Below, piece by piece: positions 13,690-17,232 of a DNA stretch of 64,000 nt (its first letter is position 1; every line of letters starts with the position of its first letter). The DNA lies in the NCBI GenBank assembly GCA_964035545.1, contig OZ037773.1, positions 5,175,751 through 5,239,750 on the forward strand. The letters are read 5' to 3'. The DNA is from Bugula neritina. Taxonomy: Eukaryota; Animalia; Bryozoa. Both the position numbers and the translations under genes were made by a program. The notes beneath the pieces were generated by a model. It did not search any database and was not told the origin of the DNA. It saw only the letters and a list, made by a program, of their open reading frames with translations.

Positions 13690-16600
13690 TCATTTTTCAC
13701 AAACATATCTTTTTTCATCAGAATCACAGTAGTTGTCATTCCATCTGAAGTTGGTAAACATGTTAATACAACTCCCGGTGTCATCAGGTTGACTTCCACT
13801 AAATTTTTTTGTGTCTAATGCATCTCCATTGTCCCAAACCCAATCACTGCCAACTTTAGTTACACCCAACCAAATCTCCCGTCTCCATGCTACAAACACA
13901 AGACATACAAACTACACTATATATAAGAGATGTGATATATTTAGTTTAAAAGTGAAAATCGCTATCTAAAACACAACATGACAAAATCAACATACACAAT
14001 ACTAATATTTATAAGATTAGATCAAAGGCTGTACCTACATCAGCACATAGATTATGTTGAACTGCTAAAAAGATAAAAAGTAAGTTCAAATATTGAGCAA
14101 TATTTTCAACAATAAGATAGATTAAGTCATAAAAATTTGTTTCTACTTTAAATTGAGAATCTACAGATTAAATGTTTACATTTTTAAAAGCCACATCGTG
14201 ACTGAATTTTCTTGCTTCTACTGCTAGTTACTATTTGTGGTGATGCAACTGTTTGCTAGCCCCATTAGTCTAGTGCCTAACAAGCTAGCTTGCTCTATTA
14301 CTGCGGCTCACTAGGCTCACCCGGCTGACCAGGTACATTATGCATATCCTGTTAAAATGGGATATATATGTGTATATATATATATATATATGTGTATATA
14401 TATATGTATATATCTATATATATATATATATATATATATATATATATATATGTGTGTATATATATATATATATATATATATATATATATATATATATATA
14501 TATATATATATATATATATATATATATATATATATATATGTATATATATATATATATGTGCATATATATATATGTATATATATATATATATATATATATA
14601 TATATATATATATATGTGTGTGTATATATATATATATATATATATATATATATATATATATATGTATATATATATATGTATATATGCGATGTACTCACAA
14701 GGTTCCTCAGCCACCACACTCTGGTACCACTCATATATCTCTTCAGTATTTAACATGAGAAGAGAAGCTCCAATAGATTGACAAGCGCTACGAGCATCAT
14801 TTGCTGTTTTCACCCTAGAAAACCACTTGATGCAAGTCTTGCGAATTGGATTGGTTTTCCATCCCTCATCACACACTACACTGGTGTAATCTGCAATAAT
14901 AAAATGTTTATAATTTTAATTACAAATAAGTTGATATTACTTTATATATATATTAACTTCTATACATTAAAATTATTATACCTGCATGGTATATTGCGGC
15001 GTAGCCTTCCCTTTCGACAACTGATAAAGTCAAATAGGAAGAATAAGCTGACCAGACACATTCCGAAGTTGTCTTCTTTATGCCGAATGATTTACAATCA
15101 GAGTGACTGATGCAGTGTACAGCACATGAGTGTATAGAGTTTGTTGAAAAAGAAGATTGATTAAGAAGTTGTCTACCCGTAGTTAGAGAGAAAATCTTGC
15201 CTCTTTGACTTCTTATCTAAATAATAAGATATATTAAGGCCTATCAAATAAAGAATTTTAGACATGCTAAATAAAGCTCACATATTCTTAAAGCTACGTT
15301 TTATAAGCATGACTTAATGGACCCTTTTCATAGGTCCTCCAGAAGTGCATAGGTTGAGCCTTGTTAAAAAAGGAAACTCATTAAATATTTAAAGTTTGGC
15401 TGCTACTTAAAATTCTAATTATGCTATAGAATTGTTCTTTTAGGAGATGGATATTTTGGTATAAGCACACATATTAGCAGTTCAAAAAGAAATCTAAAAA
15501 TATTTTTACATGAAAATTTCTAAAGAAAATAAACTTGAAGTGTTTTTGTGGTTTTGATTACTGAGCAATGCTGAAGTGGCACTTCAGCATTGCTCAGCAA
15601 CCAAAACCACTTTTATGAGTTTAAGTTTATTTCAATCAACAATTTTCATTTTGAGAAGACACAACTCCTAATTGTAAGAGAGACATTGGAGACCCCTGAA
15701 AAGGGTCTATTTGTATCCATTTTAAATTCAACACTGAAATTGGCATGGTTGAAAGACTTCAATGTGAAACAAAGAAAGTTTGACTGATGGTTTCAGTGCT
15801 AATTACTCTGCTCAGAATGCACTCACCAGTCCAACTGTGACATGATCAGCACCTTAAGCTTCTAAAAGGACTATAGACAAAATTTAAATGACCAGAGCCT
15901 ATTCAATAACTACGTAAGTGCATATTTAAATGAATATATAAAAGACATAACAAATACTCTATGGTTTATCAAATAGCACGAGTCATAGCTTAATACACTT
16001 GTGAACAAGGTACCTGCTTAAAGTAGTATAATATATATTGAATAAGAATATTTATCACACTATTGTTGTGAATTTATAGGGTTCACAATAAGTGTGGGTG
16101 TTTAAGACAAGATGCTTGCAGATTAACAATCCTGAGTATCGAGTATTATAGAGAAACATTTATTACAAGTGAATGATAAAAGAGTAAGTGAAAAGCAATA
16201 CAAGAAAAGATAGACTACATAATTGGTAGTGTTAGCACACTACTTAGTTAAATAAGCTCACTCTATGACACTCTCTCTCTCTCTCTCTCTCTCTCTCTCT
16301 CTCTCTCTCTCTCTCTCTCTCTCTCTCTCTCTCTCTCTCTCTCTCTCTCTCTCTCTCTCTCTCTCTCTCTCTCTCTCTCTCTCTCTCTCGTGCATCACAG
16401 TCCTTATATATAAGGTGCTAATGATCACCTGATCATTAGCACCTTATATATAAGGACCATCTGGATTGGCTAATGATCAGGTGATCATTAGCCAATCCAG
16501 ATGGTCGATCTTCAGCCAACGTGATATAAAAAGCTAGCACGTGGCCTATCATAGTGATAACTTCTAAGTACTATGCTAACGTAACAGAGTATAGTATGGG

Positions 16601-17232
16601 AGTTGTGTCACTTCTGATAGAGCCACAATTCTTTACACTATTACAATATTTTTGGCATAGTTTATATTTTTAGACAACTGTAGAAAAAGAACAGGGAAGA
16701 GCTTATTTTGAAATAAATAATAATATTATTAAAAATAATATTGCTGTTTTTAATTTGTTTCCACACACACTAATAATTGATTTCACCACAACAGTTTAGT
16801 TGCAGTTAGTAGAAAATAATATATATTTTCAAAAGATACTATTTTGGTGTAAGCTGGAGCAGCCGTAGTCTAGGGGTTAGAGCTTTTACCTAGTATAGTA
16901 TAAGCACCAAGTCATGGGTTCGAACTCGACAAAAGCCATTAAGGTGATGTTAGAAAGAGCACCCAGTCATAGTTGCTGCTGTGCTTCAGCTGATAAGGTC
17001 CTTAGCCCTATCTAACAAAAACCCCATTAATCAGGGGTTTCTCACAGGGATAGCGACTATAAACTTGCGTGTGTTTTATGCTATTGTAGTGTATAGCAAA
17101 AATTAACTTTTTCCTAAGAGCTATAATATATATTCAGAAATAAAAAACATTTCCAAACATTGTAAATACCTGATGTCTTGTGATTAAAAGTAGAAGCAAT
17201 GCCATTTTGAAGCAATAAGTGCAAAACCTCAT
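13690..17232 (-). CDS. Lectin gene 3: signal + PAN + C-type lectin (QPD/WND); chimera of genes 2 and 4
   Basis: Exons 17170-17232, 14982-15216, 14699-14890, 13690-13889. In frame, GT-AG. Confidence 0.9.
14362..14685. repeat. (TA)n microsatellite
   Basis: Direct inspection. Other (TA)n tracts are at 20665-20822, 20891-20991, 27325-27383, 28553-28588 and 28857-28976. Confidence 0.95.
15319..15708. mobile_element. MITE family A, copy 1
   Basis: Inverted termini GGACCCTTTTCA...TGAAAAGGGTCT and an internal long hairpin at ~15547-15610. Similar to 42253-42680 and absent from the gene 2 intron. Confidence 0.7.
16064..16637. mobile_element. Solo LTR of a second family, containing (CT)n
   Basis: Termini TGTTGTGAATT...AATTCTTTACA and a 4-bp TSD CTAT. 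Absent from the paralogous intron of gene 2. Confidence 0.7.
16856..17077 (+). mobile_element. tRNA-derived SINE
   Basis: A box TAGTCTAGGGG and B box GGTTCGAACTC. Body is shared with other copies and absent from the gene 2 intron. Confidence 0.8.

Follow-up and report, generated by a model that had tools for sequence, protein, structure and literature searches.

How does a gene arise whose first half resembles one of its neighbours and whose second half resembles the other? The question is raised by gene 3, a PAN and C-type lectin gene in a stretch of 64,000 nucleotides (nt) of the Bugula neritina genome (contig OZ037773.1, positions 5,175,751 to 5,239,750), which was analyzed as a whole and is hereafter called the window. 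On the minus strand, which carries the lectin genes in this part of the window, gene 3 lies between gene 4 and gene 2 in the order 4, 3, 2, and all three are intact gene models. An earlier note on this DNA had described gene 3 as an intact fusion of genes 2 and 4 of the anti-Lepore type, joined between the PAN exon and the first exon of the C-type lectin-like domain (CTLD). We found that gene 3 is chimeric at precisely this point and that it straddles the boundary between the two copies of a single colinear duplicated unit. Very probably, one tandem duplication with its ends in intron 2 of genes 4 and 2 gave rise to it.

The coding sequence (CDS) of gene 3 comprises 690 nt in an open frame and is divided by introns of 1953, 91 and 809 nt, all with GT-AG borders and in phases 0, 1 and 1, respectively. 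Database searches were run exon by exon, and the joined translation was used only in local checks of the frame, of informative sites and of the ratio of nonsynonymous to synonymous substitution rates (dN/dS). Exon 2 matched PAN_1 (PF00024) with 27.9 bits (Pfam cut-off 21.4), and its four cysteines are conserved with gene 2. Exon 4 matched Lectin_C (PF00059) with 35.4 bits (Pfam cut-off 22.6), and exon 3 alone stayed under this cut-off with 15.2 bits, as expected for a split domain. With the frame open, the introns bordered by GT-AG and the parental matches switching at the very passage from the PAN exon to the CTLD exons, both the intactness of the gene and the placement of its join were upheld.

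Which parent does each half follow? On the 5' side, exon 1 is 68% identical to exon 1 of gene 2 with no match in gene 4 (tblastn), and its flanks align to 12499-13070. The PAN exon is 87.7% identical to its gene 2 counterpart at the nucleotide level and 76% at the amino acid level, versus 40% of amino acids for gene 4. Genome-wide, gene 2 is the best partner of this exon (77% of amino acids; the next reaches 47%), and the PAN type in question was found in these two genes only. The promoter regions of genes 2 and 3 are 86% identical over 400 nt, and intron 1 measures 126 nt in gene 4 versus the 1953 nt of gene 3. Scored in 80-nt windows, the upstream region, exon 1, the alignable portion of intron 1 and the PAN exon all gave high scores with gene 2 and background scores with gene 4. 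Intron 1, exon 1 and the upstream region are all part of the gene-2-like tract, which spans at least 2.7 kb. On the 3' side, exon 3 is 86.4% identical to gene 4 in nucleotides and 79.7% in amino acids (52% of amino acids versus gene 2), and exon 4 is 90% and 87.7% identical (45% of amino acids versus gene 2). The best genome-wide partner of exon 4 is gene 4 with 88% of amino acids, followed by 58% for the next. In a codon alignment of the three genes, CDS sites agreeing with one parent only were divided 116 (gene 2) to 15 (gene 4) up to the exon 2/3 boundary and 17 to 125 past it (Fisher p = 1.2e-40), a split that excludes chance. The PAN tree grouped genes 2 and 3 with support of 98/96, and forcing genes 3 and 4 together was rejected by the approximately unbiased (AU) test (p = 4e-5). 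BLAST, window scores and informative sites therefore agree with the earlier assignment of the upstream region, signal exon, intron 1 and PAN exon to gene 2, and of the CTLD exons, intron 3 and 3' flank to gene 4.

The change from one parent to the other occurs within intron 2. Local alignment scores switched from gene-2-like to gene-4-like between the 80-nt windows 15040-14961 and 14960-14881, with scores against the other parent staying at background on either side. In the three-way alignment, intron 2 tracks gene 2 from the donor through GAAGTT(A/G)ATATAT and then gene 4 from TTAATATATATAAA to the acceptor, comprising ~34 nt of the gene 2 intron start (86.7% identity) and ~57 nt of the gene 4 intron end (82.1%). 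The motif TT(A/G)ATATAT is the only sequence common to the parents at the breakpoint; the rest of their second introns, 302 nt long in gene 2 and 540 nt in gene 4, is not alignable. When a junction probe (14700-15300) was searched against the whole genome, its only high-identity partners were gene 2 (probe positions 249-594, 83%) and gene 4 (probe positions 2-268, 84%), and these two matches overlap by 20 nt (14948-14967). The other matches of the probe were 62-184 nt long and 70-91% identical, all to exon 3 of other array genes. The earlier note had placed the switch in the 91-nt intron, around a TA tract at ~14943-14953; a sharp switch was seen both in the 80-nt windows and in the three-way alignment, at 14948-14956, inside the tract named.

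On a larger scale, the sequence resolves into two colinear copies of one unit, 68-91% identical by block in a self-BLAST comparison (Table). Identities were taken from anchored piecewise alignments; a global MAFFT alignment misaligned the middle of the unit (48% block) owing to large insertions. Copy 2 is the longer one through later insertions at 15294-15800, 16056-16730, 16852-17077, 17643-17988 and 18082-19072. The spacer between genes 3 and 2 (12675-13689) had been thought to recur within 17233-19693, and it does so as four colinear BLAST block pairs (12678-13070/17236-17642, 13128-13217/17989-18081, 13206-13336/19073-19223 and 13434-13689/19440-19693).

Table. Coordinates of gene 3, its parents, the duplicated unit and later insertions (positions in the window)
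Feature	Position	Strand	Details
Gene 3, chimeric PAN and C-type lectin gene	13690..17232	-	ATG at 17232, end of stop codon at 13690; 229 codons, 4 exons
Gene 3 exon 1, signal peptide	17170..17232	-	21 codons, hydrophobic, signal-like; gene-2-type
Gene 3 exon 2, PAN/apple domain	14982..15216	-	gene-2-type
Gene 3 intron 2	14891..14981	-	91 nt, phase 1; composite, gene 2 start and gene 4 end
Gene 3 exon 3, N-terminal half of CTLD	14699..14890	-	gene-4-type
Gene 3 exon 4, C-terminal half of CTLD	13690..13889	-	QPD and WND motifs, stop; gene-4-type
Breakpoint interval	14948..14956	-	microhomology TT(A/G)ATATAT common to both parents (three-way alignment); ~9 nt, TTAATATAT
Gene 2, parent of 5' half	9432..12674	-	intact, 234 codons, same four-exon plan as gene 3
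Gene 4, parent of 3' half	19694..21581	-	intact, 230 codons, same four-exon plan as gene 3
(TA)n arrays, gene 4 intron 2	20681..20992	.	3' edge (minus strand) adjoins outer duplication boundary 20689
Duplication copy 1	11512..14967	-	gene 2 intron 2 start, PAN exon, intron 1, exon 1; intergenic region; gene 3 exon 4, intron 3, exon 3, intron 2 end
Duplication copy 2	14948..20689	-	same order of parts: gene 3 5' half, intergenic region, gene 4 3' half
Intergenic region, genes 3/2	12675..13689	-	colinear with blocks inside 17233-19693
Self-BLAST block	14948-15293 vs 11512-11854		83%
Self-BLAST block	15801-16055 vs 11997-12260		
Self-BLAST block	16731-16851 vs 12397-12514		88%
Self-BLAST block	17078-17642 vs 12499-13070		75%
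Self-BLAST block	13434-14333 vs 19440-20315		73%
Self-BLAST block	14676-14967 vs 20400-20689		83%
Dispersed repeat, gene 3 intron 1	15334-15711		~378 nt, internal inverted repeats, resembling a miniature inverted-repeat transposable element (MITE-like); other copy 42304-42682
Insert resembling a short interspersed nuclear element (SINE-like), gene 3 intron 1	16852-17077		~225 nt; copies 41691-41906, 45307-45466, 46002-46213, 51363-51577

How could this arrangement have been produced? The ancestral array would have held two adjacent and strongly diverged PAN and CTLD genes, with gene 4 lying upstream of gene 2 on the minus strand. Tandem duplication of one unit of ~3.4 kb, in a single event, would have converted this pair into gene 4, the hybrid and gene 2. 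The unit would begin ~60 nt before the end of gene 4 intron 2, run through the gene 4 CTLD exons and the intergenic region, and end ~35 nt into gene 2 intron 2. Both breakpoints fall in the phase-1 intron between the PAN and CTLD exons, so that the promoter region, signal and PAN exons of gene 2 would be spliced in frame to the CTLD exons and 3' end of gene 4, across a new composite intron. The halves meet in a TA-rich microhomology that borders a (TA)n tract. A single duplication of this kind accounts for the chimeric gene, for the order 4-3-2 and for the two homologous spacers. Subsequently, gene 3 would have been kept by selection as a secreted lectin, with a canonical QPD/WND (galactose-type) CTLD placed in the regulatory and PAN context of gene 2.

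The divergence of the copies gives the event a relative age. Compared with their own parents, the 5' and 3' halves of gene 3 show Kimura two-parameter (K80) distances of 0.17 and 0.23 in non-coding DNA and synonymous distances (dS) of 0.24 and 0.33, values as similar as expected from one event. A non-coding distance of ~0.2 marks the duplication as old. Between genes 2 and 4, dS is saturated and neither introns nor other non-coding DNA can be aligned, so the two were already old paralogs when the event took place.

Gene 3 has stayed under constraint since then. Its dN/dS is 0.59 in the 5' half (against gene 2) and 0.29 in the 3' half (against gene 4); the PAN domain taken by itself gives ~0.7 against gene 2. 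At the rates of the adjacent non-coding DNA, a neutral frame of 690 nt stayed open in 0.2-1.5% of simulations with substitutions alone, a crude model but a large margin, and ~14 frameshifting indels would be expected in the frame under neutral drift. Relatives were also found outside the assembly, in JGI data, as prokaryote-style open reading frame (ORF) calls from metagenome contigs in protein databases. P0017 and P0018 correspond to a gene-3-type exon 4 with 4/59 differences from gene 3 and include the translated end of a gene-3-type intron 3, and P0019 corresponds to a gene-4-type last exon with 3/59 differences from gene 4. Differences at 7-9 positions separate the gene-3-type from the gene-4-type last exons. 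Since divergence between paralogs exceeds that between orthologs, the duplication predates the split of the sampled genomes, in each of which the last exon of gene 3 is open. Taken together, a dN/dS below 1, a frame open beyond neutral expectation and relatives outside the assembly indicate that gene 3 is a retained and probably functional gene.

A fourth JGI fragment, P0002, represents a gene-2-type PAN exon that runs into a gene-2-type intron 2 past the breakpoint and is 84% identical to gene 2. P0002, P0018 and P0019 are each listed for two contigs, the longest of which measures 11,274 nt in all three cases, and this suggests a single JGI contig with the same three-gene order. The PAN exon of gene 3 gave 15 matches in a large protein collection, among which P0002 was the only close relative, and a word search with this exon returned P0002 alone. 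A PAN ORF of gene 3 type would not be callable by a prokaryotic gene finder because it has no in-frame start. Searches of P0002 and of a degenerate DNA pattern against metagenome contigs gave no match in a collection that may omit near relatives of the window genome, and a search of genome contigs returned one unrelated CTLD-like match (37%) in a bacterial metagenome-assembled genome.

Several observations weigh against the single duplication. In the CTLD protein tree the pairing of genes 3 and 4 is weakly supported (68/87), and a forced clade of gene 2 and gene 3 CTLDs is not rejected (AU p = 0.18). The gene 2 CTLD forms a long branch of unstable position, which makes this tree uninformative, and informative sites and non-coding homology were used instead. 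Non-coding identity to the respective parent is 85.1% in the 5' half and 80.2% in the 3' half, an excess that may stem from constraint on promoter and intron or from later conversion between genes 2 and 3. Given the exon-level mosaicism across the array, gene 3 may have undergone some such later conversion. The placement of the JGI fragments on one contig is read solely from the equal figure of 11,274 nt, and expression of gene 3 is something that we infer from its sequence. Conversion could also be given a larger role: gene 3 might have started as a full copy of gene 4 (or of gene 2) and then had one half overwritten by gene conversion from the other neighbour. Conversion is active in the array, where genes 1, 4, 5, 7 and others share 91-98% identity in their PAN exons but not in their CTLD exons, and the slightly lower divergence of the 5' half of gene 3 would fit. 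A gene-2-like tract of at least 2.7 kb, however, reaches far beyond one exon and continues colinearly through the intergenic region into the gene-4-like part, no gene-4-like residue is left in the 5' half or the upstream region, and the two halves are about equally old. We regard this explanation as improbable.

The direction of change could instead be reversed. If the PAN-CTLD pairing of gene 3 were ancestral, genes 2 and 4 would each have had one half replaced by other members of the array. The gene 4 PAN exon has been homogenized with those of genes 1, 5, 7 and others (95-97%), and the gene 2 CTLD is without a close relative in the genome, as such replacements would predict. But this would require two separate replacements to stop inside one and the same 20-nt interval (14948-14967), and the lack of homology between genes 4 and 3 is not confined to the converted PAN exon: it extends to the first part of intron 2, to intron 1, to exon 1 and to the upstream region. 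A single duplication covers everything in one event. An ancestral gene 3 is, in our judgement, a shade less probable even than the conversion of a whole-gene copy. The possibility of a false duplication or a haplotype mis-join in the assembly we consider scarcely credible. The assembly was manually curated with removal of duplicated sequence (PMC11480708, where an alternate haplotype assembly, GCA_964035465.1, is named as well), which gives some reason to raise the point, yet the copies are 68-91% identical and set apart by several transposable element insertions and microsatellite expansions, far past haplotype divergence, and exons 4 of gene 3 type and gene 4 type are present as separate ORFs in the independent JGI data. 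Overall, one tandem duplication remains the explanation that we favor.

How were the ends of the duplicated unit joined? The order 4, (2/4), 2 had been presented in the earlier note as the product predicted by unequal crossing-over. The topology supports that description, with the hybrid between its parents and homologous spacers on both sides; the proposed homologous exchange fares less well, with a microhomology of ~9 nt at the join. Given that the parents were already far diverged at the time, they would have offered no long homology for classical unequal crossing-over. To judge from the alignments, the term anti-Lepore-type is thus appropriate for the topology, and homologous unequal crossing-over is not supported. 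The junction is compatible with microhomology-mediated end joining or replication template switching, and equally compatible with an unequal exchange between (TA)n tracts whose lengths have since changed.

Haemoglobin anti-Lepore, a beta-delta hybrid flanked by intact delta and beta genes, is an established case of this topology. Globin fusions of this kind are rare variants, produced when homologous unequal crossing-over takes place within coding sequence that is ~93% identical between the two genes. The arrangement described here is likewise parent, hybrid, parent, with a duplicated spacer and with a hybrid that takes its 5' part from the downstream gene and its 3' part from the upstream one. 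In contrast, the parents of gene 3 are saturated at silent sites, the join is intronic and marked by ~9 nt of TA-rich microhomology, whole domains were swapped, and the product is old and retained. Exon shuffling as modelled by Gilbert and Patthy proceeds by intronic recombination of phase-compatible modules. Similarly, a phase-1 intron in both parents allowed whole folded domains (PAN and CTLD) to be swapped in frame, although the exchange took place within one tandem family and no mobile symmetric module entered a foreign gene. Gene conversion limited to single exons within the same array also uncouples the histories of PAN and CTLD; unlike conversion, which involves tracts of ~200-260 nt and leaves gene number unchanged, the event behind gene 3 added a gene, duplicated a spacer and left a readable breakpoint. 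Another parallel is found in Drosophila yakuba, where chimeric genes arose from tandem duplications with one end in each of two neighbouring genes (Rogers et al. 2017, PMC5460883). As in those chimeras, one duplication united the promoter and 5' exons of one gene with the 3' exons of another, and regulatory elements were shuffled too. Most of the D. yakuba chimeras are young, polymorphic and made from unrelated partners (PMC5460883), whereas the partners of gene 3 are paralogs with the same exon-intron plan, and gene 3 keeps the family architecture in a new domain pairing and has survived to ~0.2 substitutions per site. No new mechanism comes to light here; chimeras from tandem duplications spanning neighbours are well documented.

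Since the duplication, the copies have been altered by insertions and by changes in simple repeats. Intron 1 of gene 3 grew from ~830 to 1953 nt. Among its insertions, the MITE-like repeat yielded 3,523 genome-wide candidates at first look, and 40 scored copies were 83-86% identical. The SINE-like insert is flanked by a degenerate target-site duplication of ~16-19 nt, and 12499-12514 aligns to both of its sides; no transfer RNA (tRNA) was found in it by ARAGORN or Rfam. The same intron contains a (GA)n microsatellite of ~120 nt beside a near-perfect palindrome of ~100 nt (16265-16510), where Rfam matches were sub-threshold microRNA-like hairpins only. In Rfam and tRNA scans of 9000-24500, no match passed the threshold, and only hairpins and TA repeats came up. 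A short TA seed where intron 3 begins expanded into a (TA/CA)n tract of 300 nt in gene 3 (14373-14676). Intron 3 of gene 4 carries a 9-mer minisatellite (GTGAGCCGG-like) at 20300-20375, represented by 2-3 degenerate units at the gene 3 counterpart (14290-14340). The spacer between genes 4 and 3 holds ~1.3 kb of extra sequence (17643-19072) that is single-copy in the genome and absent between genes 3 and 2, and it is either a unique insertion or the result of a deletion from the other copy.

On the contig of the window (C9), gene 3 belongs to an array of ~20 lectin genes at 5.125-5.215 Mb, and a further, small cluster of the family lies at 4.92 Mb. The exons of the array genes have had separate histories throughout (C9 5,125,000-5,175,750 and window 5347-37551). 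Three or four types of PAN exon can be told apart, with 86-99% identity inside each, and the PAN exon of gene 4 is of the type common to genes 1, 5 and 7. Six upstream genes (a, b, d, e, h and i) share 92-99% identity in exon 3, and their exon 4 is 79% identical or unalignable. All three exons agree at 95-99% identity within each of the gene pairs c/f and d/h (C9 ~5,137-5,143 kb and ~5,158-5,166 kb), pointing to a recent segmental duplication of a ~20-kb block with several lectin genes. In gene 5, the long intron 3 contains a large tandem repeat (24717-26085) with periods of 14, 45 and 59 nt and copies 90-92% identical.

What would the new gene bind? The combination of QPD, WND and six cysteines is canonical for a Ca2+-dependent, galactose-type CTLD. 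The translations of genes 3 and 4 contain all of these, and both are predicted to be CTLDs of this class, whereas gene 2 has QAD/WVQ in their place (9432-9640) and its CTLD is probably devoid of the canonical Ca2+/sugar site. Across the array, the motif at the binding site differs between genes (QPD, QPN, RPN, EPN and QAD). The lectins of this cluster are taken to be secreted. The manner of the join, the expression of gene 3 and its sugar specificity are each put forward here as predictions from sequence.

In a wider reading, which we advance as speculative and rather unlikely, intron 2 of this gene family, which bears (TA)n tracts in genes 4, 5 and i, would be a recurrent recombination joint, with gene 3 as the one event still readable. 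If so, the intron 2 joint together with exon-limited conversion would repeatedly re-pair PAN modules, CTLD modules and promoters, amounting to germline combinatorial lectin diversity in a colonial animal without adaptive immunity.

As a single event, gene 3 offers a clean, old and retained case in a bryozoan lectin array. Parents, product, duplicated spacer and a breakpoint of ~9 nt are all preserved in one stretch of 10 kb, which displays exon shuffling in unusual detail. One step would have brought recognition domains and regulatory context together in a new combination, and this in a phylum for which functional genomics hardly exists. A canonical QPD/WND domain would thereby have come under the promoter of gene 2 and been linked to its signal peptide and PAN domain, although the CTLD of gene 2 itself has lost these motifs, and the locus may serve as an entry point for asking whether PAN and CTLD modules act independently.

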